Assembly (NCBI RefSeq): GCF_023055435.1
Contig: NW_025964372.1
Location: 49,414,001-49,478,000, forward strand
Direction: 5' to 3'
DNA: 64,000 nt
Source of the DNA: Haliotis rufescens
Taxonomy: Eukaryota
Shown: in pieces, positions 26,845 to 55,223 of the stretch
How positions within the stretch are numbered: position 1 is the first letter of the stretch
Layout: each line of letters opens with the position of its first letter
Made by a program: the position numbers and the translations under genes
Notes under the pieces: generated by a model
What the model was told of the DNA's origin: nothing
Databases searched by the model: none
The model's input: the letters and a program-made list of their open reading frames with translations, nothing else

Positions 26845-28485
26845 TCATTTCCGTTTTGTCAAAGTAACTTCGTCTTTGGCATCAAGGAAAACCACAAACC
26901 GATGACGACCTCCACCCGACTGTATGACGTATTCATGACCCTGGAGGCCATAGAACGACACCCTCGCATCCTTCCACAAGGCAGGCTTGTGATGCTCCAG
27001 GTTAGAGATGCAGGCTTGGATCTGTCGCCGTAGATACGTCCCCTCCTCGTCTGTCTCTGTACCTTCGTGGCCGACAGTCTTGATGATCAGCTTCCCCAGC
27101 GTCCTCTTGTTCACGTCCTCAACTTCCAGCTGAAACAAACCCGTGAAGATCCGGGGTAGAATAGGTCTTCAGCAACCCATGTTGCCGTGAAAGGCGACTA
27201 TGTTTGTCCTCTACTTCCAGCTGAAGAGTGGTAACATGAAGGAGAGACTGGGCCTGACATTCCTGGCATAACCTTCCCACCAAGCAGTCACACACAGATG
27301 CAGAGGAGGCCTTACTTAAAGATCGGTAAAACACTTTGGATTCTCTACGGTATATTTTACGTTATTCTTTAAAACGAAAATGTCTATTTTTGAACGTACC
27401 AAATACTTTCTTCTTGAGACAATAGAACGATACCCTTTGAACAATACCAAAGCCCTATTTTGTAAAATAATATTCGGAATAGAACACGATCAAGCTGTAC
27501 AACCTACCAAAACCGAGGGTTCGTGAGCGGACAGCTTTTCACCATGTCCTGTCTGAAAGGGAAATAGTTCTAGGATATGGAAGACAGCAATGTTCAACGT
27601 AACTTGTGTACAACGTGGCCATTCTGGCAATTTCCAATAACAAGCCTTACCTCAATTGCAGCAATGTACTGGTGTTTCATCGTCACGTCTGTCGTCAGGG
27701 AATGGAAATACAGTTATTAAACTACGGTTATAACGAACTGAAAGGGACCACTAATTTGAATTCGTTATTACCGTAGTTCGTTATATCATATGTACGACAG
27801 TTATACAGGAAATGGACAGGACCAAGAAATAGTTCGTTATATCCGTCAGTTCGTTATAAGCGCATTCGTTACAAATGCAGTTTACTGTAACCTATTTTCA
27901 TTAACAAATAATCAAACTGGAAATTTAACAGCAGTTAATTCCATACTTTCTTCTCTATTTTAAACCCGTCACGCCGAAAACCCGGGTTCGATTCCCGACA
28001 TGGGTACAATGTGTGAAGCCCATTTCTGGTGTCCCCCGCTGTGATATTGCTGGAATATATAAGGCGGCGTACCCTACCCCTGTAGATGGTATACCTTATT
28101 GTTGAGACGAACCTCCATGCGTCACGTGTCAACACGCGGAAATCAATACCTCTAACTGATGGACGGATCTCGTAGACGTTAAACACTGCATGTGATGCCA
28201 GTCGAAATATAATAATATATATGTTGATATTATTTTAGCGTTTATCGTAATGTGTAGCTCTGTTATTTTTGTGATCTGTCAAAACCGAATTTTCGCAAAT
28301 TTTTTTTAACCATATACAAAATATACAGACTAAATACATTAGCCTGAAACGTTCAGTATTGAATCTAGACAGCATATAGTTCATTAATGTTTCGTTAAAG
28401 GCTACATGTAGTTCATACAGTTTTAGACACGTGCGCGCTTGTGGAATATTTGATTATATAAACGCTCACGTACCGTGTTGCCCAT
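26845..28485 (-). CDS. Gene A1: uncharacterised 113-aa protein, putative N-myristoylated; exons 28485-28474, 27552-27508, 27129-26845
   Basis: ATGGGCAACACG|GTACGT; TTTCAG|45 nt (TGHGEKLSAHEPSVL)|GTAGGT; TTTCAG|LEVEDVNKRTLGKLIIKTVGHEG...KRK*. All introns are phase 0 and the exon sizes are identical in three paralogues. Confidence 0.8.
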
Positions 28486-28704
28486 GTTGATGCCGCTAGA
28501 ACGTATTGACTGATGGCTTCCCTCCCCTGCGTCAGTTGTGGGAGGACGGGTGGGTTTACCCAGATCCCGGGTGGGGAACTCCAGTCACGTGATCACCCAT
28601 TGTCCACAAAAACACTGCGCAGTTCCACAGACGGGAGCGGGAGTGTTCTGGGCAGTATTTTCAATTCTGACGTCATTTAAGAAGTGTTACCTCCACAAAC
28701 CAGC
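28486..28704. promoter_or_regulatory. Putative bidirectional promoter A1/B1
   Basis: 219 nt between divergent ATGs; GGGGAACTCC (kB consensus, 28573-28582), GTCACGTGAT (E-box, 28584-28593), TGACGTCA (CRE, 28668-28675); conserved blocks shared with 39388-39654. Confidence 0.6.
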
Positions 28705-31700
28705 ATGTTCAGAGTAAGTGGCCTTTGATGCATGTATTGATTACAATGTAGAACATTTCTTATTTATGCGTGATTCCAATGTGCTTAGGGTATTTCAGAC
28801 AGCTCTCCTCCAGTTCGATATCAGTCAGGGATGACTTCTCTGTATGTAAATATAAGGAACTACAAGTATAATGATAGTGAAGTCGGGATATAATGATAGT
28901 GAAGTCGGGATATAATGATAGGATGGTCGGGGTAATATGACACTGTGAAGTCGGGGTATAATGACAGTGAAGTTCAGGTATAATGATAGTGAAGTCTGAT
29001 ATTATGACAGTTAACTCTGGGTATTGTGGCAGTGAAATCTGGGTATAATGATAGTGAAGTCTGATATTATGACAGTTAACTCTGGGTATTGTGACAGTGA
29101 AGTCCTGGAATAATGATAGTGAAGTCGGGTATTATGACAGTTAACTCTGGGTATTATGACAGTGAAGTCCAGGTATAATGATAGTGAAGTCGGGTATTAT
29201 GACAGTTAACTCTGGGTATTGTGACAGTGAAGTCCAGGTATAATGATAGTGAAGTCTGATATTATGACAGTTAACTCTTGGTATTATGACAGTGAAGTCC
29301 AGGTATAATGATAGTGAAGTCGGGTATTATGACAGTTAACTCTGGATATTGTGACAGTGAAGTCTGGGTATTATGACAGTTAACTCTGGGTATTGTGACA
29401 GTGAAGTCCAGGTATAATGACAGTGAAGTCGGGTATTATGACAGTTAACTCTGGGTATTATGACAGTGAACCCTGGGTATAATGATAGTGAAGTCGGGTA
29501 TTATGACAGTTAACTCTGGGTATTATGACAGTGAAGTCCAGGTATAATGATAGTGAAGTCGGGTATTATGACAGTTAACTCTGGGTATTGTGACAGTGAA
29601 GTCCAGGTATAATGATAGTGAAGTCGGGTATTATGATAGTTAACTCTGGGTATTATGACAGTGAAGTCCAGGTATAATGACAGTGAAGTCGGGTATTATG
29701 ACAGTTAACTCTGGGTATTGTGACAGTGAAGTCTGGGTATTATGACAGTTATCTCTGGGTATTGTGACAGTGAAGTCCAGGTATAATGACAGTGAAGTCG
29801 GGTATTATGACAGTTAACTCTGGGTATTGTGACAGTGAACCCTGGGTATAATGATAGTGAAGTCGGATATTATGACAGTTAACTCTGGGTATTGTGACAG
29901 TGAAGTCCAGGTATAATGATTGTGAAGTCGGGTATTGTTACAGTTAACTCTGCGTATTATGACAGTGAAGTTGGGGTACAATGACTGCCAAGTCCTTGTA
30001 TAAACACAATCAAGTAGGAATATGGCGACCGTAAGATCTGGGTATATTGACAGTGAACTCTGGGAATGAAGAAAGAGAAACTCCGTGAAAGATGACAGTG
30101 AAGTTAGAGTATGATGACAGTCGTGACCCGGTATTACTACAATGAACTCGACCCGTGAGGATCCTGGGTAGAATAGGTCTTCAGCTACCCATGCTTGCCG
30201 TAAAAGGCGACTATGCTTGTCGTAAAAGGCGACTAACGGGATCGGGTGGTCATAACGCGAACAGGTTGAGGTACGTGTCATCGTATTCCAATTGCGTGGA
30301 TCGATTCTCAGACTCGATTATTTACAGACCGCGGTCAACTAACAAACAAACAAGGAACTCCGTCTCAAGTTTCAGTTTCAAACACAAACTTTCACACTTA
30401 CGACAATGTGGATATATATAACCTGCATCTGAACTGATGAGGACATTGTTTCGTAGATAAATGTTCTGTTTTAAATGTAGAGCTGTTCTCCGCGACAAAC
30501 ACGAACACGAATTCTTTTCTCTTTATCCGTACATTTTACCATCTTCTGTCAGTGTTATACTTGATATTCAGCAAGGTTCTCTGTGTTCAGAATGGGTAAG
30601 ACACGATGACGTCAGTTACAGTATTTAAAACTAAATTCTCCATTCTGCGAACTTATGCACTTAAGATTTAAACGGTGAAAATATGAGATAATTTGACAGT
30701 AAAATTTACTGCAAGTGGACGTGTGCGTTTGCGTGTGGCAGCCGTTGGTTATGAATTATGATTAATCTTTTCTTTTCAGGGTTCAACAAAGTCATTCCCG
30801 TTGTATTTGAGTATAAAGAATACACTAAAACAAATATACACCGTGGCTGTATGAGTGAGTGAGTTGGGTTTTAACGCCACTTTGAACAGCTTGTCAGCTC
30901 AATGTGGGAGGAAAGGCTGAAGTGATGCAGGTCTCAGACGTTTACCACTTCGGCGAAACCCACGAGCACGGGTATGGTGCTGACAAACCTAGAAACATAA
31001 TTGGGGCGAACCGGGATTCGAACCCACAATCATAGGTTTCGGAGGGACGCAACTCTGCACAGCGAATCGCGGCGCCTTAGACGACTGGGCCACCCCCGGC
31101 TACATGAAAACTACAGTTGTAATGAATGAGTGAGTGAGTTGGGTTGCACGCCGCTTTGAACAGTTTTCCAGTTATATCACGATGTGTCAGTTTAGTGTGG
31201 GAGGAAAGCCCGAAGTGATGCAGGTCTGAGATGTTTACCACATAGGTGGTACCCACGAGCACGTGTATGGTGCTGACAAACCTAGAAACATAATCGGGGC
31301 GAACCGGGATTCGAGCCCAAGATCACAGGTTTCTGGCGTGCCCAAGGGAGGCAACTCTGCACAGCGGATTGCGGCACCTTAGATGACTGTGCCCCTGTGC
31401 CCCTGTAATATATGATCACTTAGGTACAATAGCAAATAGACTACAGTTAATTCTGAACTTAATTATGATTTACAACCATTCTTAATTCAGTCATGTCAAA
31501 AGGTCATGTCTTTGGATTATGATTGCATAACACTTGATCCTACACTGGACCCTCATTCATAAAGGATTAGTAGCTTACGGTAACTGATATACTTAGTTAC
31601 TTACGTGAGGAGAATGATACCACTCTGCAAGAAACATCGCGCTGTGAATAGATCGGTTTTATCATGCACATCTATGTTAAACACCTCCTATGTTTCTGAC

Positions 31701-32016
31701 ACATCGGCTTTACCATGCATATAAGTGTTATACGTGTTATACTGGGGCGGTCGGGTAGCCTAGTGGTTTAAGCGTTCGCTCGTCACGCCGAAGACCCGGG
31801 TTCAATTCCCGACATGGGTTCAGTGTGTGAAGCCAATTTCTGGTGACCCCCGCCGTGATATTGCTGGAATATTGCTAAAAGCGGCGTAAAACCATACTCA
31901 CTCACTCACTCTGACATAACTGATCTGTTGACATATGATGTTTACTACAGGTGTATAGCATCACGTGACCACTCAGGATCAATGAATACTCAGGAAAATT
32001 ACACAGTATGTATGTA

Positions 32017-32073
<57 letters not shown>

Positions 32074-32857
32074 CTGTCAAGGTACCCAAAACACAGATGA
32101 TAAGCCTTATCTACTTATTGCGGATTTGAATAGTAGTAAACACATTCCAAGAGCCCAATTCTTTTCCTTGCAGAAGGATGACGACGATATGGTGTCTGGG
32201 GTAGGTACAAGTTCATTTTATAATTAATTAATCTCATTACAAACATACCAGCATGCGCTCATTGTTAACGTAAAAACAAAGGAGTGACTATCTGTATGTA
32301 AATCAATAGGACACCTGTTACACTAAATGGCAATGTGTAAACACCTTGCGTCATAGCCAAACTTGTTATTAATAATTAATTACTTTTGAATTGCATTCAA
32401 CGCATCTGGAGAAAGAACTGCTGATTCGTTCTTATTTAATCTTTCCTAAAGTGACATCCAGTGTGTATTGCAGATCGTGAACTGTGGCCCTTACATTGAC
32501 TTTCCCGACATCTCCGATTTCATCCAAGAGAAGCAGCACCGTCTGCTGGGCGTGGACCGGAAGGTGCTCCAGTGCTGCTACTCTGTGCTAGGGGGCGAGC
32601 CTGACTGGGTGTGGAGGAATGCCAGCATGGAGGTCTACGGGAGATTCCTCACTGTCAAGTTCTACGCCAGAAGTCAGTGCAACAAATATGTTGTGTCCAT
32701 CAACAACGAGGAAGTGACCTCACAGTGTGTCCACAGAGGGCTGCGTCTCAAGCTCAGAGATGGCTTCCGGTCGGTGTTCAGCTGGATTGCGGACACGGCT
32801 CAAACTGTTCTGGGAGCAGTGGCTGGAGGTGGCATGGGGATGCTGACCTTTCATTAA
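28705..32857 (+). CDS. Gene B1: uncharacterised 139-148 aa protein; exons 28705-28713, (30780-30806, donor mutated), 32174-32200, 32474-32857
   Basis: ATGTTCAGA|GTAAGT; TTTCAG|GSTKSFPLY|TTGAGT; TTGCAG|KDDDDMVSG|GTAGGT; TTGCAG|IVNCGPYIDF...MLTFH*. The terminal exon is GC3-rich and coding-like and aligns with the A proteins. Confidence 0.7.
28866..29980. repeat. 21-bp-based minisatellite (GGGTATTATGACAGTGAAGTC variants, about 63-bp higher-order unit) in B1 intron 1
   Basis: Direct tandem array. Confidence 0.92.
30150..30352 (+). mobile_element. Family-2 headless SINE-like element
   Basis: Starts GACCCGTGAGGATCC; AAC-rich tail; internally deleted. Confidence 0.8.
31744..31911 (+). mobile_element. 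SINE family 1, near-consensus (others: 26093-26228, 27965-28070, 33101-33263, 33620-33785, 40660-40762, 40800-40905, 43073-43205, 46237-46392)
   Basis: tRNA-like head and (CACT)n tail. Confidence 0.9.
32020..32071. repeat. (TG)n microsatellite
   Basis: Perfect dinucleotide run; a (CA)n run is also present at about 54249-54306. Confidence 0.95.
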
Positions 32858-35620: not shown

Positions 35621-38600
35621 CTATATCCGTTTTGTCAAAGTAACTTCGTCTTTGGCATCAAGGAAAACCACAAACCGATGACGACCTCCACCCGACTGTA
35701 TGACGTATTCATGACCCTGGAGGCCATAGAACGACACCCTCGCATCCTTCCACAAGGCAGGCTTGTGATGCTCCAGGTTAGAGATGCAGGCTTGGATCTG
35801 TCGTCGTAGATACGTCCCCTCCTCGTCTGTCTCTGTACCTTCGTGGCCGACAGTCTTGATGATCAGCTTCCCCAGCGTCCTCTTGTTCACGTCCTCAACT
35901 TCCAGCTGAAACAGACCCGTGAAGATCCGGGTTAGAATACGTCTTCAGCAACCCATGCTTGTCGTAAAAGGCTACTATGTTTGTCGTAAGAGGTGACTTA
36001 CGGGATCGGGTGGTCAGGCTCGCTGACTTCATGTCATCGTATTCCATTTGCGTAAATCGATGCTTATGATCTCAATCACTGGATTTATGTACTCAAACTT
36101 TTAGATCTTAAACAATCTCAAGAATGGAATAAGTTTAGGGTGTGAAACGTACCAAAACCGAGGGTTTGTGAGCCGACTTCATGTCGCCGTGTCCTGTCTG
36201 AAAATAGAGAGAGGACATTGAGGAGACCAAGTAAACAGTTAATTAGTAAAATCAGTTATATCCCGGCGTGCCATCTTGATGTGGGAGAAAGTGATTCAGC
36301 TCTTGGACATTTACAACTTTGGTGAAACCCACGAGCACGGGCATGGTGCTGACAAACATAGACACATAATCAGGGCCAACTGGGATTCGAACCTACGACC
36401 ATAGGTTTCTGGCACACCTAAGGGGCGCAACTCGAATTGCTCTGCGAATTGCTCAAAGGCCTCAGGACGTTAGCCATGCGTACCCCCAATTATACGTCTG
36501 AAAGAAGATAGGCACTACTAGTTTATTTTCACATGTTATGAACTGTCACATTGGGAAGCATTTACAGTTGACGTTGATCTGATTTAATATATGTCTGAGA
36601 TAATACGTAAATTGAAAACTTGGTACAGGGTCGCTGTATTTTCTATATAGACATGTACTAGTTCACATCACATGTTAGAAAACATCAGTGGAAGACCCTG
36701 AAAGGGTACCAAAATAACTACTGCCACGAAACATAAAATCTCGTTGTTAGAATCGATTTCGGTTTTCGTATTTCAACATGACTACAATATGTTGACATTA
36801 GGAAGAAAAACAAACGTGTTTCTTCAGAAAATGAATAATACGATTCTAAAATAACATAGTTTATACAGAAATATATGGTTAGCGGTGCTTATTTCAGAGA
36901 AAGATATCTACTTTTACCTCACGTGTTCATCATACAGATGTTTAGGCGAGCCCTTCGGAATTTAAGTATGCCAAAGAAAATACTTTTGACCTATATTCAA
37001 ACTTGGTGATTTCATCTCACCAAAAGCCAGATAATAACTGGCTGTAATTTAAAAAAATCCCTGGCGCCTTTTCATTGATATTGGTAGCATCATTTCTGAA
37101 TACCCAGGATTGTTTTATGAATCATGATGCGCAGGGGAATTACCTCACGAGAAAGTATCAAAATGCTCTGTTTAATTCACGACTGCATTTTCTGCGTATT
37201 TAGTATTTATTTTATCATTTAACGGTGCTAAACCAACCAAACCCCGAACGTCAATTATGCAATGCTCCACCTGAACCATGGTATACCTCAGATAAATCAG
37301 TTAAGAATTACGCTCACTGCAGTATTTGCTCAATATTTAGCAGTTTCAAATCTCAAGTTAACATGGCCCTGAACTGGAGACGAAGTGAGTTTGATTATTA
37401 TATGTGTTCCGCAACAATTTGTCAAGTTTACTTAAGCTTATTCTGCCTTCCTTGCATTGTCAAACACATAAAATTTTATCCATGATTGTTTAAATACCTG
37501 ACGTTATTTTCGTTTTTAAACCTAGCAGTAGTTTCTGTCCTGACAATGTTGTAAATGCGAGTGATTTCGAATATTTCATTTTAAATTTTAGCATTATGCG
37601 AACAGTGAATAAAAATTCATCGTGTGTACAATTAGACCGATTTAGACAAATGTAGTGATATGGTTTGATGTGCCGAATCCAATTATTAATCATATTCCCA
37701 AACAAACCAATTTTCTAAAATTATATGAAATTCATTAAGATCGTACTTCATTGGAATCACACTGAATGAAACAGTTTTGATGCAGGATAAAAATCTTAAA
37801 TACTTAGGTTTAGGGATAGTGGTGTGGGTGGGTGTGGTGTGGGAATAATGGCCCCGCAAAATTTATATCCGACAAAATCATATTTTCGATTTCTCAATAA
37901 TTTATATAGTAACTGAACTGAACCAGTCCTATTTTCATTATATATGCTGATGGGAGTTGTCATTAAATACACGTCTTCCATAAGGTGGGGTTTTATCGTC
38001 GCCGATAGTCCATCTAGTGCAGTGCGTAATATATGATGATTTTTATTTATATAAACCCGTCAAATGATTGTCAGCAACTGGTAAATAAACTTCATTCGAT
38101 AAACGTTCTGAAAAAGCTTAGAGAAACACGAGAAAAAACACGTGACAAAACAGGACAATAGACTAGAAAATCCAACATTAAAGGGCCACCCCATACACCC
38201 CCCAAAAAACAACAACAACAACAACAACAACAACAAACAAACCCCCAAACCCAAACAAACAATAAACAAACAAAACAAAAACAACAAAAAACAAACTCAA
38301 TTCTGAAAATGTCAGGAATGAGTTATTTTATCCGACATAGAACTTTTCAACTGGTTTTCAACACGTATTTAGTACTTTCACAATAGTTATCCGAGTTTCA
38401 TAAACCTCGCGATTAACCTCGTTCTTACATCTCTGTTTCGTGTTTGATGTCAATTGGAAACTTCCCCGTTGACAAAATGAGGGGGGCTGTTCGTCTGCTT
38501 AGTAAATAGACAAAAAACGATACTCCATTGTCCAAGACAGAGAGTCATATGTCAAAGAAACAGTTCAAGTGACTACAAATTCATATTTATTGAAGAGATC

Positions 38601-39387
38601 AACGGAGACGCCAAAGCCTCCAAAGACTCCAATAACGTACCACATGATGTTTGCGACATTTCAACAAGACAACGAAGAACAACAAACTAATGGACGTATA
38701 TATTGATTGCAACACAATCTGTAACAAGAGCGTTGCGCGTTGAGGCGTGAACTGTTTTTTGTTGTGGTTAGCTTAAACTCGCATGGCCTTGAAACGTTAT
38801 AGGTGAGGTGAGGTGAAATTGGGTTTAACGTCGCGTCCAAGATTATTGCACTTATATAGCGACGTGCATGCACGTGTGTGTGTGTGTGGCTGCTTGTACT
38901 AGTCCGGACTGATGCCGATTTATAGTGCTAGCTCACTGAGATACCATGCCGCAGTTTAACATGAATACCCCACTCAGACACAGTATACTGACTCCGAGCC
39001 GACCAGTCCTTGTTTTAGCCCCTTAATGTCGAGCGCCAGACAGGGTAACAACAAGTACCATCTTTTAACGTCTTTTGGTATGACGCAGCCGGGGATCGAA
39101 CCCCGGACCTTGAAACGTAATACCCTGCTGTCACAGAATACCTTGTTTGTGAACACATATCAAGTAAGACCGCGAATTCCTGGCATGCCTCGTCGGTTTA
39201 TAACCCTGCGTGTGCTGCTGTGAAAATACGCTACTCTGAAACGTAGATGGTACCATCTTGAAATAAGTCTTATGTACTCGTTTGTTGTTTAACTATAGGA
39301 GCTTATATTAGTTCAAACATTTGTGGACACATATGTTTGTGAATAGTTGATAAGGTGATATAAACGCTTACGTACCGTGTTGCCCAT
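35621..39387 (-). CDS. Gene A2: 113-aa paralogue; exons 39387-39376, 36197-36153, 35905-35621
   Basis: MGNT|TGHGDMKSAHKPSVL|LEVEDVNKR...KRI*; canonical GT-AG sites; exon 3 nearly identical to A1. Confidence 0.8.
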
Positions 39388-39654
39388 GTTGGCGCTGCCA
39401 GAACGGAATGACGGTGTTTTTTTCCAGTCCAGCTTCAGTAGTGGAATGACGGTGGTTTTCCCAGCCCTTCTTCATTTGTGGAATGACGGGTGGGTTTTAC
39501 CATGACATGGGATCCATGACTCCAGTCACGTGATTCCCCCCATACAGAGATACTACGCAGTTCCACAGACTGGACTCTGAACAGTGTCCTGGACATTTTG
39601 TTTTATTTCTCAGTTCATTAAAGAAGTTTTACCGACACAAGCCAACATATCAAA
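39388..39654. promoter_or_regulatory. Putative bidirectional promoter A2/B2
   Basis: 267 nt; shares GACGGGTGGGTTT, CTCCAGTCACGTGAT (E-box 39525-39534) and CGCAGTTCCACAGAC with the A1/B1 spacer; overlapping kB-like GTGATTCCCC. Confidence 0.6.
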
Positions 39655-40124
39655 ATGTTCGGAGTAAGTGGCCTTTTAGTTGTTATCTGTTTCAGTTTCT
39701 TTGTGTATTGATCTGTCATTTCAATGAGTACAAGCGAGTCATGTTCTGATCTCTTTCAGTATACATGTATGTTCTAAATACTTGATACAAAAAAAAAATT
39801 ATTTTGAATTCCTGGTATATTTCCTAGTTTACCTCTAAGAACCAGTGTATACAACAGTCATGTCACCAAGTACCTCTCAGTGTTCGGAGCATGAATCTCT
39901 TTTGCCCAACATGTTGCCTTTATTTCAATAATTATCTAGATAAGTGAGTGAGTGAGTTGGTTTAACGCCACTTGTAACAATATTCCAGTTATATCACGGC
40001 ATGTTGTGGGAGGGAAGTCGGACGCGATGCAGGCCTCAGACTTTTACCACGGGGGTAAAAGTTTTTTGATGCACTAATGTACTGAAATAATGACCCTCCC
40101 CTAATACATGTTATATTTGTGGAT

Positions 40125-40281
40125 ATAGAGAATCTCACCCGATTCTCTTTTGATATCAAACATATCAACACGAGTTGATAAAAGTGGGGAAACTCCGAGG
40201 CTTGCCGAGGTTTTTTTCCACTTTTATCAACGAATGTTGATATATTTGATATCAAAAGACACGAGGGTGAGATTTTTTTAT
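40125..40281. mobile_element. Hairpin palindromic DNA element
   Basis: AATCTCACCC...GATAAAAGTGG / CCACTTTTATC...GGGTGAGATT arms around CCGAGGCTTGCCGAGG. Confidence 0.7.
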
Positions 40282-42104: not shown

Positions 42105-42196
42105 TGTATCGTAGCGTATCGAGATACGTATCGATTCGTGATGTAAGTATCGAGATACGTATCGTGTCGTGACTTAGGTGTATCGTTGCAGCCCTA
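42105..42196. mobile_element. hAT-like transposon terminus
   Basis: Subterminal GTATCG repeats ending in ...GTATCGTTGCAGCCCTA (TAGGGCTG-type TIR). Confidence 0.5.
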
Positions 42197-45100
42197 AACT
42201 GTATACATTGGATACACTGAGCCCATGGTGATGCAGGGGAAGATTAGAGTGTGACTTGAGCTCAGTTGTCTCCTCAACGTCCAAATCCTATCCAGCTATG
42301 CGGAAGGTTACCTTCAAGAAGGAATGGGTATCAACCGAGACGAAGTCACTGTCAGCCAGTATATCGATTATCGAATTACAGACAATGCCTGGTGTAAACG
42401 TGTCGTGAAGTTTCTATTCCACTGTGGTGAACAGGCAATATGCTACAGTAGCGCCAAAAAAACGTTTGAATAAATAAAAGGTTATCGACGTGAATACCCC
42501 ATATATGTCCATATATCACAGGTAGCAAGGAATTAGCCGACTGTTGTCTGACATGAGCGCTGCCAATGTGGTTAACATGAAAAATACACAACCTTGTCAA
42601 TTAATTGATTCAATTTTGTCTTTTCAGAGGTCCTACAAATCCTTCCCGTTGTATGTAAGTATAAGGATCGATCTGATTGGATCATTATAATCTTACATAT
42701 TAATATGAATTTAATAAACAGAAACTACAATTTATGATTCAATGCGGTTTAAAATATCATTTTGAATATTACAAATATCCGCACTATACAGATAGTCTTA
42801 CAGCTGATTCATATATTTCATTTGATGAAGAATATATATACATGATTATCAATATTTAGGACCTTTCTTAGCACAACCCACAGATCAAGAAAACAAGCAG
42901 ATTTGCATATCATGCACATGCATGTAAACCGAGAACCCCTAGATGTGTGCTGTAAAGATACTGAGATAAACACATACTGTCGGGTTGTTCCTGTTGTTAC
43001 GCAGTGGATTAAAGGAAAAGTGGATTGGAGAATAACTGTTAAACTTTGCAGTTGCATTACATGCACGTTTAGAGTGAGTGAGAATGGTTTTACGCCGCTT
43101 TCAGCAATATTCCAGCAATATCACACTTGTACCCATGTCGGGAATCGAAACCGGATCTCCGGCGTGTTGAGCGAACGCTTTAACCACTAGGCTACCCGAC
43201 CGACCCACATGTTTAGAGAGGAGACTGGCATACACATGTGCACATGTAACGGTGTACTCATGCTCCAGTTGCAGTCTCATTATATTGGTTAACTGTGATC
43301 TATAAAGATTTCGACAAAGGGCGCATGTTAATTAATTTCTTCAGCCTGAAAACAAACAGACAAAAAGAACAAGGGAGCTCATCGGATGTCGTCATTTGGA
43401 AATATCCCAGACGGTTATAGTTTAATAATAAAAACAAGTATCCATGCTGTGAAAGCATGTTCGAATTTCGGATTGCGTCGATAATACGATTACTACTCCC
43501 TTGTTGTCATCCACGTTTTCTGGTATAACCCTACACTTGTGTATTTGTCATCATTCACTTGATGCTCAGTTAATGAATTTATTACTGGTACAATTAGTGG
43601 TAGCACCACTTAGATTACCTGACAAAGGTTCCCATTTGGCATTTATTGTGTCTGGGGTAATTATCCAATCTAAATGCAGGTTTGAAGTGAGGTGAAATGG
43701 GTTTTATGTAATATACACGTGGCAGCCCAGCAAGAGGTAAATGATCAGTTGATTTGCTTTTTTTGTAAATCAGCGGATCGTTCCTAGTCATCAAAGGATG
43801 ATTAATCACTGTTATCTTGCACAGTGGATATGTCAAAAGTGAGTGTTTACATGTCTAGGTTTACTAAAACAAAGGGAATACACTCATATCATGGCGTGAA
43901 GTGCCAATGTAAAAACAACATACTTTGTTCAAAGGGTTAACTGATAATACGTTGATTGGTTGCTCATTGTTATCTATCACTCAATGGATTTTTTTATGAA
44001 CCGTGGACGCTTTGAAAATAATTGTCACGTGGGCTTTCTCAGCCGACCCTTGAGTCTTGACACCTATGTGAAACACCTGAAACAATCTAAGTCATCAGTT
44101 GAGAAACGAACACGGGTTATAATATCCCGAAACGATATATATCTTTTAAAATATTTGATTGTTACAGAGACACGTGACATCGATCGCGAATAAGTTTCTT
44201 TGTACAGCTGCAGACGAGTGGGATACTGTTCCTTTGTGTGGATATTCACGGATACATTACTCGAATAAGGAAGCTGCCTAAAATTTATATACATAAATTT
44301 GGTAGGTTGTAATTATGGTATTTGAATTTTGTTTTGCTTCATTTGCTGTAGCATTGAACTGATTCGTTCTTGTTCCTCTACGTCTTGGTTAGGGAAATTC
44401 TTCAATGCGCGATAGACGTTGTTTTCACAGGTCTTTTCCTTTGTCAGCGTGTACATATTACCGCCAATTTGTAAAATGTGATTCTCTCAGGCAATTTAAC
44501 AAATGTGTAAGTATTTCAGTCATTTTGACAGAAAAATCGGCCCAGATTGACTAAAATTGATAAAGACAATCAAAAGGGCCTAAAAACATCACAGCAAAGG
44601 ATTAGAAGCCCAACAACATAGAAATGTACTTTTCAATGTAACATATTCAGTCTCTTGGTGATGACATTAAACATCAAAATGTTTGGAATTCGTTATCATA
44701 ATAATACAGATGGAAATGTTTTTCAGTCACTTTGTAAAATAACTGAATATTTAGGCGTTTAATAAATTTGAAAATGTTACACATTTTGACAGTAAACAAA
44801 TATACACACTATAAAAAAAGCAATGCTCAAGTGAAATATTTACTTTGTGTTGCAAGTCAAAACAGTGTAGACGAAAATCCCAAAATTACCAAGCAAGTGA
44901 CTTCTCAAAACTTCGTCACCATTACCGATGCTACCCACAAAGGTACCTACATTTCCTTATTATCTCGAAAACTGTATTTTATTTTGTTGATCAATGTGAC
45001 CATACGCCCTTATTACTACCCATAAAAGTGACTAATGCGCTTACGAATGGCGCAGCAGAGGTCGCGAACTAGTCTTGATTTCTGCTATACATCCAGGTAT

Positions 45101-46392
45101 TCCCTGGGAAAAAACAATAACAAAGGCAACAACCAGTCCCGGGGAATTGCTTAAGATCAGTGCCCCTTTAACACGAACACCCCACTCAAACACAGTATTA
45201 CTGACTCAACCCGACCTGTCCTTGCTCCTGAATGCCGAGCGCCAGTCAACGTAACAACAAAGGCAGGAAACGTAACATTGCGAAGTGTAGGTTTACCGAA
45301 ATGCGTGCCCTGGAGATATAGTGGATGAGGCTCCTAGCATGATCAAACAACCTAAGCTGGTCGTTAAAGGCGACCAATTATTTGGAAAATAGTTCCAACA
45401 AAGTCCCCCCCCACCTCCCCCCCCCCCCCCCCCCCCCCCCCTATACATCATGTGAGGGCCATGTGATACGAGTGAAATATATTCATGGCTTACAATGATT
45501 ACGAGTCACCAAAAGTCTATTTTCAGTGAAAAAGGTCGATCGTGTCCATGGTGGGTCAGTTGGTTTTGTGGAAAAGCCATTAAAAGCATGAGGGCAGTAA
45601 GCTACGTTCTATTCGTCTGACAAAGCGTTCATTCGACATGTATTCCTTGCAAATCATCTTTACGTTACATATCAAGCGGCGGTTATCACCTGGAGTAGGT
45701 GACCCGTGAAGATCTCGGTTAGAATGGTTCTAAGCTTGTCGTAAGTCTAACGGGAACGGGTGGTCAGGCTCGCTGACTTGGTTGATGCATGTCATCGATC
45801 CCGTCTGTCACTGGATTGTCTGGTCCAGACTCGATTATTTACAGGCCGCTGTCATGTAGCTGGAATATTGCTGAGAGCGGCGTTAAACAACAAACAAACC
45901 TGAAGCAGGTAGCGAGGCTGTCGCCAATATCTCGGAAAAATCAACGTTATTAATACTAGTGACCAAACGTACTTTATTATATGACAGTTATCTCATGTTC
46001 AAAGATAAAATAATTATTATCACTATTTAGGACCTTTCTTAGCACAACACCCAGATCAAGAAAACATGCAAATTTGCATATCATGCACATGCATGTAAAC
46101 CGAGAACCCCTAGATGTGTGCTGTAAAGATACTGAGATAAACACATACTGTCGGGTTGTTCCTGTTGTTACGCAGTGGATTAAAGGAAAAGTAGATTGGA
46201 GAATAACTGCTGTTTAACTTTGCATTTGCACGTTTAGAGTGAGTGAGTATGGTTTTACGCCGCTTTTAGCAATATTCCAGCAATATCACGGGGGAGGACA
46301 CCAAAAAATGGGCTTCACACTTGTACCCATGTCGGGAATCGACCCGGGGTCTTCGGCGTGACGGCGTGACGGCGTGACGGCGTGACGGCGTG

Positions 46393-49300
46393 TTATTTCA
46401 TTTTTGAAAAGGTTATTTCGTCTCGAGCATCAAGGTGGACCATGAATCTGTAGCGTCCGCGGCCAGAGGATACCACATATTCATGACCCTGTAAGCCAAT
46501 GAACGTCACTGTAGCATCCCGCCACACTGCAGGCTTGTAATGTTCCAGGTAAGAGATGCAGACTTGGATCTGTCGCCGTAGATACGTCCCCTTCTCGTCT
46601 GTCTCTGTACCTTCGTGGCCGACTGTCTTGATGATCAGCTTTCCCAGCGTCCTCTTGTTGACTTCCTGCACTTGAAGCTGAAACAGGAAATACGCATCGA
46701 TAAATGACTTTCGTTAACTTCAACCTGCATAAGCGACATCGACATGAGTGTTTGTTTGTTTTGTTTGGTTGTTGTAAACAATCGAGTCTGTACCAGACAA
46801 TCCAGTGATTGATATCATGAGCATCAGTTATTTGGGATACGATGACCTGCATCAACCAGGTCAGCCTGTCTGACCACCCGATCCCGTCAGTCGCCTCTTA
46901 GGACAAGCATAGTCGTCTTTTACGGCAAGCGTGGGTTGCTGAAGACCTATTCTACTCCGGAATCTTCACGGGTCTGACCAAGTTCAGTTTATGTTGTGGT
47001 GCTTCCATACAATGATTATGTTCTTTAAGGTCGTGTCAGTGGGAAGAACTACGAACTACAAAAGAAAAGTTAGGAATACAAAATAAAAGATGAAACTAAC
47101 TGCATACGGCGAGCTGCGAAGTAATTTCTCCTTGCTCATTAAATGAAGTATAAACTTGACACATAATGCTTGAAATCCATCTGTGCGTGTAAATTTAATA
47201 TTCTCCTGAGGCGTTACTGCTTCGTTTTCATTATAAATCATAAAATTTTATATAAACCTGAGAAAGGTGAATAATTGCGTGGATCGATGCTCATGATATC
47301 AATCACTAGAGACTCGATTATTTACAGAGTGTCGACATAGCTGGAATATTGCTGAGTGCGGCGTTAAACAACAAACCAACCAACCAACTAAACTTGGTCT
47401 AAGTGACATATCAAATGATGTCACTGTCACTTGGTCGAAAACCAGTCTAGTCACGGCCTGGTGATCACACCGCTCCTCCGCTTAATTTGCCCGGCTTCCG
47501 TCACCATTCGGAAAAGTCCGGCAGTCATCGTCATCCAGTGTTTTTGATTTCCTTGTCAGAGAACAAGTGACCTTAAGTAAGGATAAGATATATGGATGAA
47601 CAATTTCTTTATTACAAATATGAGCGACGTTTCGGTGTAGGTTATAACTCCGTTATCAACCAAGTGATGTTCAGAGTTTAGTTGACAAGTATTTATACGG
47701 GATAGGAGGCAGTGTTTCTTCATTTGAGTAGGTTGAAGATGCAGGTACACTGGCGTGGGGAAGCCTGTTATGTACACAGAAGGATAGAACATATTTCCCG
47801 GTGTAGCCTGTTGTATGGTTTGTTTGTTGTTTAACGCCGCACTCAGCAATTTTCCAGCTATATGACGGCGGTCTGTAAATAATCGAGTCTGGACCAGACA
47901 ATCCAGTGATTGACAGCATGAACATCGATCCACGCAATTGGGATCGACGACATGTATCAACCAAGTCAGCGTGCCTGACCACCTTTTACGACAAGCATAG
48001 TCACCTTTTACGACAAGGATGGGTTGCTGAAGACCTATTCTATCTCGGAATCTTCACTGGTCGCCTGTGATATGAATCAAATGGGGAAGCCAGTAATGTA
48101 AACAGTAAAAAGGATTGTGGCTGATTGGGGTCTTCGATGAGTTGGTGGTACACCGGTGGTATGTCGTAGCCTTGGTCACGATTGATTGGTGGTTGGAGTT
48201 GGAGTCTTTTGATGTTGATGGCTTCTTGTAGTTTTCTGATTTTGAAGTCTTTGAGGTTGGTATGGCCTCAACTGCGATGGAGAGATGTCTGATTCAGCGA
48301 CGAATCAAGATTTCTCCTCCGTCGAGAGGTTGGAAGACCACGTCGGGGAGAACGTTATGCCGGAAACTGCGTACAGGAAGTGGACATGTTTGGTGGGGGT
48401 AGCGTTATTATGTGGGCGACTATCTCTCATCTTGGCAGGACAGGTCTGGTCCATATCCAGGTCAATTTTACGGCTCAACGATACAACAACGAAATTCTCC
48501 TACCACACGTCCTCCCAATTGCAGCAGACGGCAACGGTGTATTCAAGCAGGACAACGCTCTACCGCATACGCAACGGATCACAAGAGCCTGTCCACATTT
48601 TTCTCCCCTGGTCCTCCAGATCCCTGGATTTGAATCCCGTGAGCACCTGTGGGAAGAATTGGATAGACGGCTACGCCGACGTCGACCACAACGGCAGACG
48701 TTGCAGCAGTTGGCTTTTGCGTTGCAGGCCGAGTGGGCGACCATTCCCCAGGATGTGATTCGCATACTCGTCTCTGTCATGGACAGGAGATGTCAGGACG
48801 CTATCGATTCCAACGGGGGACATATGCGTTATTGATGGTAGCTGACCTTCATCATGGACATTTCCTATGTACCGATAACTGAGATGACTACAATCATCAA
48901 GTGTTCTCTCTTCAATATCTTTGCTGAATACCTTGTACTGTTCCTCGTTTAAATATATTTTCCTACCTTTACGCTACGTGATTTTTTAAGAGTACATTAT
49001 GACAGGACAGAAGTACTCACCAAAACAGTTGGAGCATGCGCTGACGATTTCTTTTGATATTCAACCTGAAATAAGGGTGAAAGTAAACTGCATTGTTTAT
49101 CTATGACATGATTTGTTGTTGAGGTGGATGCAGAAATACATCGCCCGGGGTTCAAATATACTCTTTAGGGAGTAGGGAGTCATGAACTAGAAATGTTAAT
49201 ACCAAGTATTAGAACAAAGATAAGTGTTGCAACAAACATCCTATGCATGAACGTTAATGTCACACGTTTCACTGTGTTTTTGTGTTCTTATATTTGGGTC

Positions 49301-49852
49301 GTTGCCAATGAGAAGGCCACAAACAAATGTAAACATATCTCCTCCGCGTTTGCCATATTGGGAAAGGGGTCTTACGAAAACTATTTTACACTGCGCTGTT
49401 TCAATGAAATGTGTTCTATGTTTTGCATGACCAGATACTTGAAATGGTGTACGCGACATTACAGTCATGTTTATCAGAATGGCGACCAGTCACCAATTTA
49501 TTGCAAATGTTCATTTGCCCCACCTACCATCACAACTGTAATGTCCGGACGAACCTATAGCGTTCTCATTCAGAGGGCATGAGGTAAACCACAATATATT
49601 ATGCCTTTCACAACTTGAATGAATGAACCATCCACGAAATAATCTTGTCGAAATGAGAATAAATATACCTACTTAAGGAACATATTAAAGAACACCGCAA
49701 ACCCCTTTCACGGTCAAAAGAAAGTCGACTGTACGATTCTGACTGTATTATAAACGTGTGTTTATGAAACACTTTCAAATGGGGATGATACTAGGTGTTC
49801 GCGTCATGAAACAACAGACAACATTACAGAATCTACTTACCGTGTTGCCCAT
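46393..49852 (-). CDS. Gene A3: 113-aa divergent paralogue; exons 49852-49841, 49065-49021, 46677-46393
   Basis: ATGGGCAACACG|GTAAGT; TTTCAG|VEYQKKSSAHAPTVL|GTGAGT; TTTCAG|LQVQEVNKRTLGKLIIKTVGHEG...KMK*. Many substitutions relative to A1/A2 are synonymous or conservative and the frame is preserved. Confidence 0.82.
47560..48260 (-). mobile_element. Penelope-like fragment with degenerate hammerhead motif, interrupted by a family-2 element (47818-48062)
   Basis: Minus strand TTGATAA-CGGAGT-TATAACCT-ACACC-GAAAC-GTC at about 47659-47626. Confidence 0.4.
48270..48835 (+). mobile_element. Tc1 transposase remnant in A3 intron 2
   Basis: FGGGSVIMWATIS, FKQDNALPH, LPWSSRSLDLNP / EHLWEEL (frameshifted DDE domain). 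Confidence 0.9.
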
Positions 49853-50024
49853 GTTCACGTCGGATCAGGTAGATGTGGTGAGCGGCCGAGTCACTGTGCT
49901 CAACAGACATCAATAAACCTTTCGTGGAAAAATATTTATAGAATTAGTGCTTCCCGGAATCGATCAATAAGCCATACTCGAGAGTACCCTGCAAACGTCA
50001 TCCGAACAAGCTCAACGCGTGAAG
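49853..50024. promoter_or_regulatory. Putative bidirectional promoter A3/B3
   Basis: 172 nt between divergent ATGs; TTCCCGGAA (GAS/STAT consensus, 49951-49959) and TTCGTGGAA (49921-49929). Confidence 0.5.
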
Positions 50025-53000
50025 ATGGGAAACGTAAGTAATCATTTCTGTCTTAATTAGAAATGTTCCAGGATTCTTTGTGAAATATTGCTGGGTAATG
50101 AAACCCAGTTAGCCATGACCTCGTTTGTCTGGAAACTCCAGGTTCCGGAAAATTGCTGTTATGAAACTTCACAAAAATACAAGGACTAACTCCGTATCCA
50201 TGGTTCGTTTCGCCCAGAAAGTTCAAACAACAGTTAGGGTCATGAAAACCTCTTCGAAAAAGGGAAACGGTATAATCAGTACAAATATTATTTTATGATG
50301 AAACTAGAATTATTGTGGCATCCATAAATTCTCTTCCTTATTTACTGAGGGGGCGCGATTCGCTGTGCAGAGTTGCGTCCCTTGACCACGCCAGAAACCT
50401 ATGATTGTGGGTTCGTATCCCGGTTCGCCCAAATCATGTTTCTAGGTTTGTCAATACCATACTCGTGCTCGTGGGTTTCGCCGAAGTGGTAAATGTCCGA
50501 GACCTGCATCACTTCGGGCTTTCCTCCCACTTTGAGCTGACTGTATAACTGTAATACGGTTAAAAGCGGTGTTAAACCCAACTCACTCACTCCTTATGCA
50601 CTGCCCAGGTTTATATAACACGGTTGCAATGCTCCAGGCTTGACTTGATTTTTCGTGTTCTTTTTCTTATCTGTTGTTGTGACATACAGCGGTATGTGGC
50701 GCTCAAGGGCTTTTTACTTCTAGTCCCTGTGTAATGTTATCAACACTTGTGGCAAGCCGATATCTAAATGCAAAAGATCCCTCCGCTCCTCCTAAATGAA
50801 TATCCTCTGTAATCTTAAGGTGACAACCCACACGCCTCTAACACACGGCGCAACGACTTGACAAACGTACCGGGCGGAGGGGTGGGCTGGGGTGGGGTGG
50901 GGTGGGATGGGATGGGATGGGTCGGGATGGGGTGGGGTGGGGTGGGGTGAGGGGAGAGCAGTGGCACACAGTTCACCCAACCTTTGTCAAAGAATGACAA
51001 CATATGGTATGCCATGTGTAGCGCGGTGCGACAGATTGTGAAGCTGTTCCTGGACCTAAGGGTGACCAGGCCATGTCACACAATGAGACTTGCAGAATCT
51101 ATTCACCAACGTGAACAGTTTTAGAAGCACTTTATCACTATGCATGTGGCGTCAGAATACACAACTGCTTGTCGGGGCTTTAATTTTTCACACTGGAAGG
51201 TAACAGAGTCGACTTTCTAAACAAGCTGCCCAGGAAAATATGTTGACAGGTGTGGTCATATCTGATTTTTTTACGTATTTTGAAGAATAGTAGGCGTGAT
51301 CGGTAAAATCTGTGCTAGAGTTTACCTTTTAGTCTCCAAACGCCTCTCTGTGTCATCCCAGGGACCAGTCTGTGAGAGGACTCTAGTCCTGCGTCGACGT
51401 GCACTATGCTTATGATATTCAGTTGATTAGAAAGACCAGAAACGCAATATATCTCAACACAGCAAGACCCGTGAAGATCCGGGGTAGAATAGGTCTTCAG
51501 CAACCCATACTTGCCGTAAAAGGCGACTATGTTTGTCGTTAGAGGCGACTAACGGGTTCCGGTGGTCAGGCTCGCTGACTTGGTTGATGCATGTCATCGT
51601 AACTCTATTACGTTGATCGATGCTCATGATGTCAATACCTGGATTGTCTGGTCCAGACTCGATTATTTACAGACCGCCGTCATATAGCTGGAATATTGCT
51701 GAGTGCGGCGTTAAACAACAAACAAACAAACAAAAATATGCAGGCAGGGGAGATAATCCATATCGCAGACAAAATTGGATGTTGCACTTTGACATTTCCC
51801 TTGGCGCTCACTGCATTAGCGATTTGTTTGCAATTTAAAAAAAAATCTAAATAGTTGAAGTCTGCAGCCACTGGTCCTGTAAGAACAAAATGATTTCATG
51901 TCGCGTAAGGGGTTGAAGTAGCGTAAAATTATTGTCCCCCTAACAGGGTATGTCAGTCCCACATCATTCAATGTATTGTTATGCATACCAGAATTTTAAA
52001 ACGTAGTATTTTTGTCATTTTAATCTAAGGCTTAACTGGTAAACTATCGCCAGTGACTGAAGGGATGATATAAATTAAATCCAGCCAGGGCCCATGCAGG
52101 AAGAAAAGGCACTGTAAGTCCCCATTGTCCCAGGTATGGTGATCTCCCTTTAGTTACACACGATCTCTAGCCCATTTTTATATTGTGTTGTAAATTCTTT
52201 CTGCTTTTATATGTTCCTCAACTAGCTTTAATACACTCTGTGATATTCTAGTTATTGTACTGTCCTTTGATGACAGGTTTTTATAAAGTATATATACTTA
52301 TATGTTATTAATGTATTAATTCTCGTCACTATATTGCTGAAATATTGCCGATGTGACGTTAAATTCTCACTCACTCACTCATGTCGCGTAAGAACGAATA
52401 ATTGGTATAGTTGACAGCCACATCCCGTTTTGTCGATCAGGTTATCTGACACCTGGAATATGTCGCACTGAAAGCTTAACACTGTGTCCAGGAGGCTAAC
52501 CAACACAGTCAGGCTATAGACCGAAACAGGCTATAACGTCACGGTTGAGTGATTTCTATATTTGAACAATATAGACTTTTCATTTCTTAGTAGCTAACAT
52601 TTGTTGAAGTGTTGCCAACATCTGGCCATAGATATGCCTGCTCGCTCTTGATTGGACGTAGGCATGACAACCCATGTAAACCTTCCGGGTACATTCTGCG
52701 TATTATTGTCGGTCAGGTCAAGTTCAAGTGTATCCTCATAAATCACAACATGTGATACAGAGAGGATATAAATACATCTGTACACATATACAGACATAGA
52801 TTTGTTCAGTGAGAATTCGTAGATTGTAATAATAAAGCTTGGAGTTGATTGCTTAACTCTAAGTATACGCTTGAAATATTTCAAATGGATTCTTTCAATC
52901 ATAACTGACATTACAAGGCCCCGCAGTTCAGAGGCGTATAATATTGGTTGAATGGTGTGGTATGGTTATCGAATTATGTTAATAGACTAAACGTATGCAT

Positions 53001-54268
53001 CATGCATTTTGAATCTCTGTCCGAGTCATTATTAAGATAATTAGCAACTCTATCACATCGATTCAAGTAGATGAGGTGAATTGGGTTTAACGTCGCGTCC
53101 AAGATGATTGCACTTATATAGCGACGTGCATGTACGTGTGTGTGTTTGTGTGGCTGCTTGTACTAGTCCGGGCTGATGCCGATTTATAGTGCTAGCTCAA
53201 TGAGATACCATGCCGCAGTTTAACATGAATACCCCACTCAGACACAGTATACTGACTCCGAGCAGTCCTTGTTTTAGCCCCTTAATGCCGAGCGCCAGAC
53301 AGGGTAACAACACGTACCATCTTTTAACGTCTTTTGGTATGACGCGGTCGGGGATCGAATAGCGATCCTGCGATAGACGATGTGCAATTTTGTTCACTAG
53401 GATGGGTCGTATCGAGGATATTCGTGAACGATCATCAGTCAAACTCTCTGACCTTTCTCAATGCATTCTCAATGTATTCTCAATGTTCAAGATTAAAGCG
53501 TCTAAATGATCAGATGTTTGTGACAACAGGGGCGTGATTAAGACACCAAGACGTTCGTGCATAGCGGGAGTAAACCCCCCAATCAGACTACAGATTGGTG
53601 GCTGCTACTATTTTGCTACATTGGCTATGTATAGTTCGAGAAAGATAAAATAAGCCCAACATATGTGGAATACACTATAAACTATCAAATGATATCACAC
53701 ATACAGTCAGACGCCGTACAACTTGCTCACAGTGATCACAGTCCAGGAACAAACTAAAACGCCCCAACCCTAACCCCCTTATCCTCCTGAATTATATTTT
53801 TGGGCTGGCTGGGAAACCCATGCAGCTGTAAGAAAACAATTCGCCGAAACCATCACAGTTACTGTCACAACAATTAAAATACTGAGTGAACTCAGACATT
53901 AAGTATTAATATTTCTCCAGTGTTATCCACTCAGTGTATCAGTCGATATAGTTCTAAGTGAACGGTTGTCAATGTATCATTATTATAAGTGGACACACCT
54001 GACAGCACTGTGTTAACTGGGGGCGAGATATCTACAAATAACGAATCAATATCATGCAACGACACCTGAATATGGAAACTTTAAGTGTCGGCCACACGCG
54101 AAGAGACTATAACGTCATTATTTTATAGTCCCACGATGTTACAATATGAAATGACATCATTTGCAAATTAACAAATGCAGCCTGGTCAAAGTCCGAAGAT
54201 TCTGTTTGTGATACAATAAGCAGTGTAAATATTTTCCAAACTCCCATGCACACACACACGCAAACACA

Positions 54269-54308
<40 letters not shown>

Positions 54309-55223
54309 ATCAATCTCTTACCTTATGCACAGAGGGAAACGCTAGATCGGTACTTGTTCAAGTCATAATTAAAAATAATAGGTCAAAATATACAAACGAC
54401 AGTAGGAGTATTCGAAAGTAACAGAGGATTACAGAAATACAATAAGGTAAACAACCAAGAAAGACGACATGGGTGTATAGTTAAAAAATAAATGTTTGGG
54501 ATGGCGTGGTTCGAATCAATCTTCCAATGACAATTTGAGCGAGTCTTGTTCATTTTGTAGTCCCTGGCCTTGTTTGACTAACGTAGCAGGTTCCCTTTGA
54601 CGTCGGCGTACACTTCTCCCGATGATATCCCAGCGTGCGCTATGGTGTTTGTTTGTTTGTTGTTTAACGCCGCACTCAGCAATATTCCAGCTATATGACG
54701 GCGGTCTGTAAATCATCGGGTTTGGACCAGACATTCCAGTGATTAACATCATGAGCATCGATCAACGCAATTTGGATCGATGACATGCATCAACCAAGTC
54801 AGCGAGCCTGACCCCCCGATCCCGTTAGTCGCCTCTAACGACAAGCAGAGTCGCCTCTTACGGCAAGCATGCGTTGCTGAAGACCTATTCTATCCCGGAT
54901 TGCATTCACGCAAAGTGGAGACGTTACGTGTTACTGTAAATAATGAAAATCAACAATACCAACGGCTCGGCCCGATTTTGTTGACCTTTCAGCGTATGGT
55001 CATAAGTAAGCATGACCTCGCTGTAACCCACACGGAGGAAGTGCATAGTGTATGTGCAATGATTTGGGTGTGTTGGTGCGTCAGGTGGTTGTCCCCAAGC
55101 CGTTATATCTGTGGCAGAGAATGACCAGACTAGAATATTAGAAATTATTTAATCTTTGTGAATTTGTAATTCCCTCTATTTCCTTTTCAGGGTGCCACAA
55201 CACAACTTCCGGGACACCTGGAT
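50025..55223 (+). CDS. Gene B3 (partial): exons 50025-50033 (MGN) and 55191-55223 (GATTQLPGHLD); downstream exons not found in window
   Basis: ATGGGAAAC|GTAAGT lies 172 nt from the A3 ATG, the same geometry as B1/B2. A strong acceptor TTTCCTTTTCAG precedes a 33-nt phase-0 exon ending in GTGAGT, and GATTQLP resembles GSTKSFP. Confidence 0.55.
51466..51731 (+). mobile_element. Family-2 headless SINE-like element, full length (others: 27138-27208, 35914-36085, 45701-45900, 46750-46974, 54645-54900, 62800-63021)
   Basis: GACCCGTGAAGATCCGGGGTAGAATAGGTCTTC 5' end; ATATAGCTGGAATATTGCTGAGTGCGGCGTTAAAC(AAAC)n 3' end; no A/B boxes seen. Confidence 0.85.

Follow-up and report, generated by a model that had tools for sequence, protein, structure and literature searches.

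A head-to-head pair of small expressed genes, one conserved and one variable, in the abalone Haliotis rufescens

The region examined here is a 64 kb stretch of Haliotis rufescens (C594:49414001-49478000). We call the whole of it the window, and positions count from its first letter. It holds two small genes, A and B, whose starts face each other in three places (cassettes 1 to 3). Both are real, expressed genes, and they are transcribed divergently from a common region of 170-270 bp. Sequence comparison shows that A and B are paralogues of one uncharacterised, ancient metazoan domain family. It also shows that the two were duplicated together on several occasions in Haliotis, and that A is conserved and the core of B hypervariable between recent copies. 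On balance, we lean to the reading that this expressed, paralogous and divergently transcribed pair, copied as a unit, acts together, with a variable B and a constant A.

Results

Facing starts and a common promoter region

The 14-mer ACCGTGTTGCCCAT is the reverse complement of ATGGGCAACACG followed by GT. The 64 kb contain it at exactly three places, with ends at 28485, 39387 and 49852. These ends are the ATG positions of minus-strand exons whose translation starts with MGNT. Opposite each A start lies a plus-strand ATG exon of 9 nucleotides (nt) followed by GTAAGT, at 28705 (MFR), 39655 (MFG) and 50025 (MGN). The two ATGs are 219, 267 and 172 nt apart in cassettes 1, 2 and 3. An earlier note, made from these letters alone, had claimed the same facing exons and gaps, and our reading of the sequence reproduced them at all three sites. 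Bidirectional gene pairs with a shared promoter lie on opposite strands, with facing 5' ends and starts less than 1 kb apart. The cassettes have this layout, and so does the pair on another contig (C557), where the ATG gap is 198 nt.

The spacers of cassettes 1 and 2 are 71% identical (28518-28726 against 39458-39676). The 172-nt spacer of cassette 3 matches neither of them, as the earlier note had said. The promoters of cassettes 1 and 2 have a single well-conserved block, and the palindromic E-box GTCACGTGAT (28586-28591 and 39527-39532) lies inside it. In cassette 1 the box is right where the A1 RNA contig has its 5' end. The same motif occurs upstream of the B gene on contig C13, and cassette 3 and the C557 pair do without it.

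Both genes are expressed and start on very short exons

Gene A has one exon plan in A1, A2 and A3 (12, 45 and 285 nt), and each copy encodes 113 amino acids (aa). The RefSeq entries P0001-P0004 ('uncharacterized protein', from four Haliotis species) have the same 113-aa layout, and the A3 protein is 98% identical to P0003. The identity of plan and length predicted for the A genes thus holds for all three copies, with the RefSeq layout behind it. RNA contig X1 record 1 joins 28594..28474, 45 letters and 27129..26860. It is the spliced A1 message, and it takes the 5' untranslated region (5'UTR) of A1 to 28594 at least.

A1 and A2 share 97.5% identity over exon 3 and some 80 nt of the upstream intron (26847-27208 against 35623-35985). 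This stretch looks like a recent gene-conversion tract. Between A1 and A2, the 45-nt exons encode 4 different residues out of 15, and promoter identity is only ~71%.

Gene B continues from its 9-nt exon through microexons that are all in phase 0. They measure 27 nt (32174-32200, 42628-42654) or 33 nt (55191-55223). The 9-nt and 27-33-nt exons proposed in the earlier note were found as described, and the RefSeq proteins P0005 and P0009 employ the microexons. The large exon of B1 is 100% identical to P0005 (H. rufescens LOC125376919, 139 aa). RNA contig X1 record 6 ends at the 32474 acceptor and carries 106 letters more upstream, which fits 27 + 9 nt and ~70 nt of 5'UTR. By this contig, the ~70 nt lie upstream of 28705, and the 5' end of B1 is near 28635. 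Record 10 of X2, from another Haliotis species, runs to 28713, then has 28 letters, and goes on from 32175. Therefore, it uses the donor of the 9-nt exon and an extra 27-nt microexon. The earlier note had proposed checking the predicted junctions against RNA. Spliced contigs support the junctions of A1 and the donor and acceptor of B1.

B1 also has a decayed, optional microexon at 30780-30806 (27 nt, GSTKSFPLY), with TT instead of GT as its donor. Its intact counterpart is used by the H. rubra orthologue P0006 and by the X2 contig, and B2 retains an intact form at 42628-42654. Much of intron 1 of B1 is occupied by a tandem repeat (28866-29985; subunit of 21-22 nt; Tandem Repeats Finder periods 43, 65 and 369).

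Several Haliotis RefSeq models named 'uncharacterized protein' (LOC125376919, LOC124123680, LOC124123685, LOC125376908 and others) are these same genes, with 97-100% identity over the large exons. The existing annotation is anonymous: it names no family, does not connect A with B, and is silent on the paired layout. Our gene models draw on the RefSeq proteins P0001-P0015 together with the spliced RNA contigs. The exons of A1 and B1 occur in all four RNA runs and are highest in X2 for both genes; the depths of contigs cannot rank expression. The RNA 5' ends of A1 and B1 are ~40 nt apart. The presence of both genes in the same runs and their close 5' ends agree with the co-regulation suggested in the earlier note.

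The pair was copied as a unit

A census of the own genome counted 14 A-type and 11 B-type terminal exons. On C594 the copies form two arrays, one at 49.44-49.53 Mb and the other, whose order is inverted, at 51.93-52.07 Mb; C13 and C557 each carry a single pair. The second array was viewed through 3-kb loci around the terminal exons. In the C557 pair, the minus strand carries B (MGS, a 33-nt exon and a large exon) and the plus strand carries A (MGNQ, a 45-nt exon and a large exon). The C557 copies share only ~51% (A) and ~26% (B) identity with the window pair, and synonymous sites have reached saturation. On C13, A and B also face each other, and P0013 matches the B exons there. A first exon for the C13 A gene, sought beside the B start, was not found.

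Between types 1 and 3, identity is 71% for A and 52-60% for B. Between C13 and C557, it is 63% for A and 46% for B. The two groups share 50-54% (A) and 25-33% (B). The A and B matrices therefore give the same groupings, which is expected if the genes were duplicated together. Gene numbers of the A and B proteins run consecutively on one contig in both H. rubra and H. rufescens, a hint of adjacency.

These comparisons show that A and B were copied together anciently to C13 and C557, later in the two C594 arrays, and recently in cassettes 3 and 4 (the fourth cassette lies beyond the window). The pairing itself is old. Duplication as a unit had been proposed for the window, and the head-to-head pairs that recur in both arrays, on C13 and on C557, with their agreeing identity groupings, bear it out.

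A changes slowly and the core of B rapidly

The ratio of non-synonymous to synonymous substitution rates (dN/dS) indicates purifying selection on A, with 0.25 for A1 against A3 and 0.18 for C557 against C13. Between recent A copies, exon identity is 98.2-98.6%, against 77-98% for the flanks.

For B, we compared three copies of the MGN type: B4 (L038:2824-3201), L022:1501-1875 and L023:1501-1875. Their dN/dS is 1.3-2.0. Over the core, taken as codons 1-95 of the large exon (285 nt), 32-42 differences separate the copies, against 5-19 in 397 nt of 3' flank (Fisher p 1e-8 to 2e-5). It means that the core is 3-9 times more diverged than the flanking DNA of these recent copies. In the 90 nt of the Gly/Ala-rich tail, 0-5 differences were counted. 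The core is hypervariable although the flanking DNA of the copies is 95-99% identical.

A shared domain found in several marine phyla

We compared the A and B profiles with each other (hhalign). They align over 53 columns, with an E of 8e-5 and a probability of 60%, along the LRRQIQxCI helix and the strands that follow. A HMMER scan with the A profile, counted in cluster representatives, matched 107 at E<=1e-3 and 67 at E<=1e-10. The named sources are Branchiostoma, Saccoglossus, Ptychodera, Glandiceps, Anneissia, Mercenaria, Saccostrea, Ruditapes, Crassostrea and Dendronephthya. The A domain thus ranges over bivalves, a crinoid, hemichordates, amphioxus and an octocoral. All named homologues are 'uncharacterized', except one Branchiostoma protein that was automatically named collagen alpha-1(XIX) chain-like.

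A B profile built from Haliotis only gives 20-31 bits on most outgroup proteins of the A family. On Ptychodera proteins it reaches 44 bits over 8-9 repeats, where the A profile gives 12-19 bits. The cross-matches of the B profile therefore close the link between A and B. The Ptychodera flava proteins P0078, P0082 and P0092 (795-1503 aa) carry 4-9 tandem B-type domains; they are repeat proteins and not small single-domain genes. By these profile matches, A and B are paralogues within a family that is not abalone-specific but spread over several marine invertebrate phyla.

The searches used single exons of the window and full-length RefSeq proteins. Pfam gave nothing above threshold for the A and B exons, 40 homologues and 10 longer homologues (best UPF0270, 18 bits, cut-off 25.6). 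A profile search of PDB sequences gave no match (E=2), and a literature search on the locus names found no paper on these loci. The earlier note did not recognise the family. This stands as regards Pfam, and homologues were nonetheless found in several phyla.

The AlphaFold2 model of A is confident and has a strand, three helices and a four-strand meander (predicted local distance difference test, pLDDT, 78.5; predicted template modelling score, pTM, 0.70). Fold searches with it reached at best E 0.25 with Foldseek on PDB, Z 4.2 with VIA-align on a wide set, and E 0.14 on BFVD; the ESM Atlas gave no usable match. A cystatin/stefin-like fold, with a helix on a five-stranded sheet and a QxVxG loop, was considered and rejected, with no Pfam Cystatin match and no cystatin among the fold matches.

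Start exons and the B tail

In both genes the start codon sits on an exon of 9-12 nt, which encodes Met-Gly in most copies. Met-Gly is the first requirement for N-myristoylation, and the PROSITE pattern for this modification (PS00008) is G-{EDRKHPFYW}-x(2)-[STAGCN]-{P}. It fits A1 and A2 (GNTTGH), the C557 A (GNQISD), B3 (GNGATT), P0008 (GSGATK), the C13 B (GVANSS) and the C557 B (GSASSR). Among the homologues, 13 of 103 Met-starting matches begin with MG, mostly as MGxxxS. No signal peptide was found in A or B.

The C-terminal tail of B (for example WIGNAAGAILGAVGGAG) is rich in Gly and Ala, and A has no such tail. The hydropathy of the B tail is low, with a maximum Kyte-Doolittle value of 0.65-1.07 over 19 residues. 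The older B proteins of C13 and C557 have a different, charged tail.

Incomplete and rearranged cassettes

The intact A/B pair within the window is that of cassette 1 only. The earlier note counted three cassettes. Three facing A/B starts are indeed present, but a whole B gene exists only in cassette 1, and B2 and B3 consist of two 5' exons each (Table 1). Downstream of B2, no DDDD microexon and no large exon was found before the 3' end of A3.

We also examined the next 54 kb of the contig, beyond the window. Two plus-strand exons of the B1 type come next, the microexon GDDDDMVSA at window-equivalent 78585 and a large exon at 79701. An insertion that resembles a short interspersed element (SINE) with a tRNA-type head, at window-equivalent 79500-79700 (L037/L019), takes the place of the 5' part of this large exon. 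The same SINE-truncated exon was found again in copies of the second array (L020, L021); therefore, the broken unit was itself duplicated.

The RefSeq protein P0009 (LOC124123680) reads MGN, GATTQLPGHLD, GDDDDMVSA, GATKQLPGHMD and a large exon. These map to 50025, 55191, 78585, 93927 and 94824-95201 (C594:49464025-49509201). The model covers 45 kb and crosses a fourth A gene. Its later exons lie 23-45 kb downstream, beyond the window end. In this way it combines phase-0 exons of three partial B units over an antisense A pseudogene. P0009 could reflect either a genuine chimeric transcript or an artefact of gene prediction.

Cassette 3 belongs to a segmental duplication shared with the fourth cassette. 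Its copy stops at 55316, short of the position that the B large exon has in cassette 4. Cassette 4 is without the 73-bp piece holding B exon 1, and a TGA interrupts the reading frame of its A copy. A duplicated segment with A and the 5' part of B was probably inserted into B2, which would have rearranged cassettes 2 and 3.

Table 1. Features of the A/B region in window coordinates
Feature	Position	Strand	Description
Gene A1	26845..28485	-	Exons 28474-28485 (MGNT), 27508-27552 (45 nt), 26845-27129 (285 nt including stop); 113 aa; from tblastn with RefSeq proteins and RNA contig
Gene A2	35621..39387	-	Exons 39376-39387, 36153-36197, 35621-35905; 113 aa
Gene A3	46393..49852	-	Exons 49841-49852, 49021-49065 (VEYQKKSSAHAPTVL), 46393-46677; 113 aa
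Gene B1	28705..32857	+	Exons 28705-28713 (MFR), 32174-32200 (KDDDDMVSG), 32474-32857; 139 aa
Gene B2, 5' part only	39655..42654	+	Exon 39655-39663 (MFG), microexon 42628-42654 (RSYKSFPLY, intact AG/GTAAGT)
Gene B3, 5' part	50025..55223	+	Exon 50025-50033 (MGN), microexon 55191-55223 (GATTQLPGHLD)
Shared divergent promoter and 5'UTR region, cassette 1	28486..28704		219 nt; CACGTG E-box 28586-28591
Divergent promoter region, cassette 2	39388..39654		267 nt; CACGTG at 39527-39532
Divergent promoter region, cassette 3	49853..50024		172 nt; no E-box; no alignment to cassettes 1 and 2
Segmental duplication	45167..55316		Cassette 3; 96-98% identical to fourth cassette, window-equivalent 85121-94060

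Other repeats in the window

A minisatellite at 11649-16988 has a 21-bp unit (ACACACATCCCTCCATCCACC) in ~255 copies with 88% matches. Satellite-like arrays with a period of ~214/416 bp lie in both orientations at 56944-61132, just beyond the point where the cassette 3 duplication stops. Near that breakpoint (55316), a 168-bp repeat occupies 55591-56338. A suspected Tc1/mariner remnant at 48380-48832 had no Pfam match and was rejected.

Discussion

How the pair could work

If A and B act together, one shared promoter would deliver both proteins at once. Their Met-Gly start exons would lead to N-myristoylation in most copies; B1 and B2 have lost this signal, and in A3-type copies it is doubtful. 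A lipid anchor would then tether both proteins to membranes, and B would add an amphipathic, Gly/Ala-rich C-terminal tail. The two related domains might work as a pair, with B as the diversified specificity subunit and A as the constant subunit. A constant and a diversified subunit are the typical layout of recognition or defence-type systems.

A more far-reaching proposal can be offered only tentatively, and we regard it as rather doubtful. The lipid-anchored family would be a two-subunit intracellular recognition system in abalone. A conserved A and a diversifying B would be made from one bidirectional promoter and amplified together. The phase-0 microexons would let partial units splice into new B isoforms, as the 45-kb RefSeq model might illustrate.

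Several observations weigh against a jointly acting, lipid-anchored pair. B1 and B2 lack Gly2, and the A3 type (MGNTVE; GNTVEY) misses the PROSITE pattern at position 5; therefore, lipidation is not universal. The AlphaFold2 model of B is poor and unusable (pLDDT 45). A predicted complex of A(16-113) and B(20-139) scored 0.00, which is no answer and speaks neither for nor against binding. The RNA data are contigs, so they show neither expression levels nor strands, and their depths are no measure of co-expression. The excess of dN over dS in B is marginal by bootstrap, with dN-dS <= 0 in 5-19% of replicates. The synonymous sites of B also exceed the flank rate, and patchy gene conversion from diverged copies could therefore explain the excess in place of positive selection. 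The RefSeq A model on C13 (P0016) lacks MG, and its start is 4.7 kb away from that of B. Finally, many array copies are truncated or have stop codons. Among them are 5'-truncated B exons, the A4 copy with its TGA, and A fragments that span residues 34-113 only.

Alternative explanations

Part of this evidence fits another history, which we consider possible but clearly less probable. The head-to-head layout could be a by-product of an inverted duplication around one promoter, followed by segmental copying. A and B would then be independent, and the change in B would reflect relaxed constraint and decay in a redundant array. The many broken copies, the rearranged cassettes 2 and 3, the loose C13 pair and a complex prediction that gave no support are all in line with it. 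Nevertheless, relaxed constraint predicts a dN/dS of ~1 and equal divergence of exon and flank, not a core that exceeds its flank 3-9 times beside a fully conserved tail. The tight geometry of 172-267 nt was kept at C557 despite saturated synonymous sites, and the B open reading frames are intact in the RefSeq models.

The earlier note also suggested an effector/inhibitor pair. In such a pair, B would act on membranes via a Gly-zipper-like tail, and the conserved A would restrain it. The tail is invariant where the core varies, A has none, and the genes are tightly co-oriented. However, the hydropathy of the tail is low, and the tail is replaced by a charged one in the C13 and C557 B proteins. 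Partners in arms races usually co-vary, yet A is nearly invariant. Neither protein has a signal peptide or a likeness to known toxin families, and the Pfam searches revealed no toxin or inhibitor domain, so the suggestion was not upheld and we judge it unlikely. Still more improbable, to the point of being nearly negligible, is that the cassettes are open reading frames of a transposon or virus, amplified by the mobility of the element. The region is rich in SINE-like and tandem repeats and the copy number is high. But no transposase, integrase or viral family was matched, and the duplicated segments have differing end points and no terminal repeats. Spliceosomal introns and exon phases were kept where synonymous sites are saturated, and the homologues are ordinary nuclear genes in several phyla.

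Comparison with known systems

Divergent histone H2A/H2B pairs are known head-to-head pairs on a shared promoter. Like them, the abalone genes are transcribed divergently, have starts less than 1 kb apart, were duplicated as whole units, and are partners expected to be made together. They differ in that the abalone partners are paralogues of each other, change at very unequal rates and have first coding exons of 9-12 nt.

The earlier note compared the cassettes with the sensor/helper pairs of plant nucleotide-binding leucine-rich repeat (NLR) proteins. The divergent orientation, the tandem amplification and a variable partner beside a conserved one are alike, and a hypervariable B with a conserved A suits this part of the comparison. 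On the other hand, Pfam searches of A, B and 50 homologues found no NB-ARC, LRR, TIR or other NLR domain, and the proteins have 113-170 aa. The analogy is thus one of layout alone.

Small N-myristoylated proteins (MGxxxS/T) offer a further parallel. An MG start with a small residue at position 6 is shared by A1 and A2, the C557 A, the B3/B4-type, the B proteins of C13 and C557, and many outgroup homologues. They differ from these families in sequence and fold, where no relation was found, in the loss of Gly2 in B1 and B2, and in the Glu at position 6 of the A3 type.

Meaning for abalone and for the family

The exons of 9-12 nt at the start and of 27-33 nt after it make these genes a useful stress test for gene predictors. 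The domain family spans cnidarians to amphioxus, and our searches found for it no Pfam entry, solved relative or literature. A conserved, tightly linked pair of paralogues, one constant and one hypervariable, is a first functional handle on this family. Abalone are farmed and threatened, and their immune and stress genes are poorly known. For transcriptomes of infection or stress, the A/B genes are a concrete candidate for a membrane-tethered, diversifying pair.

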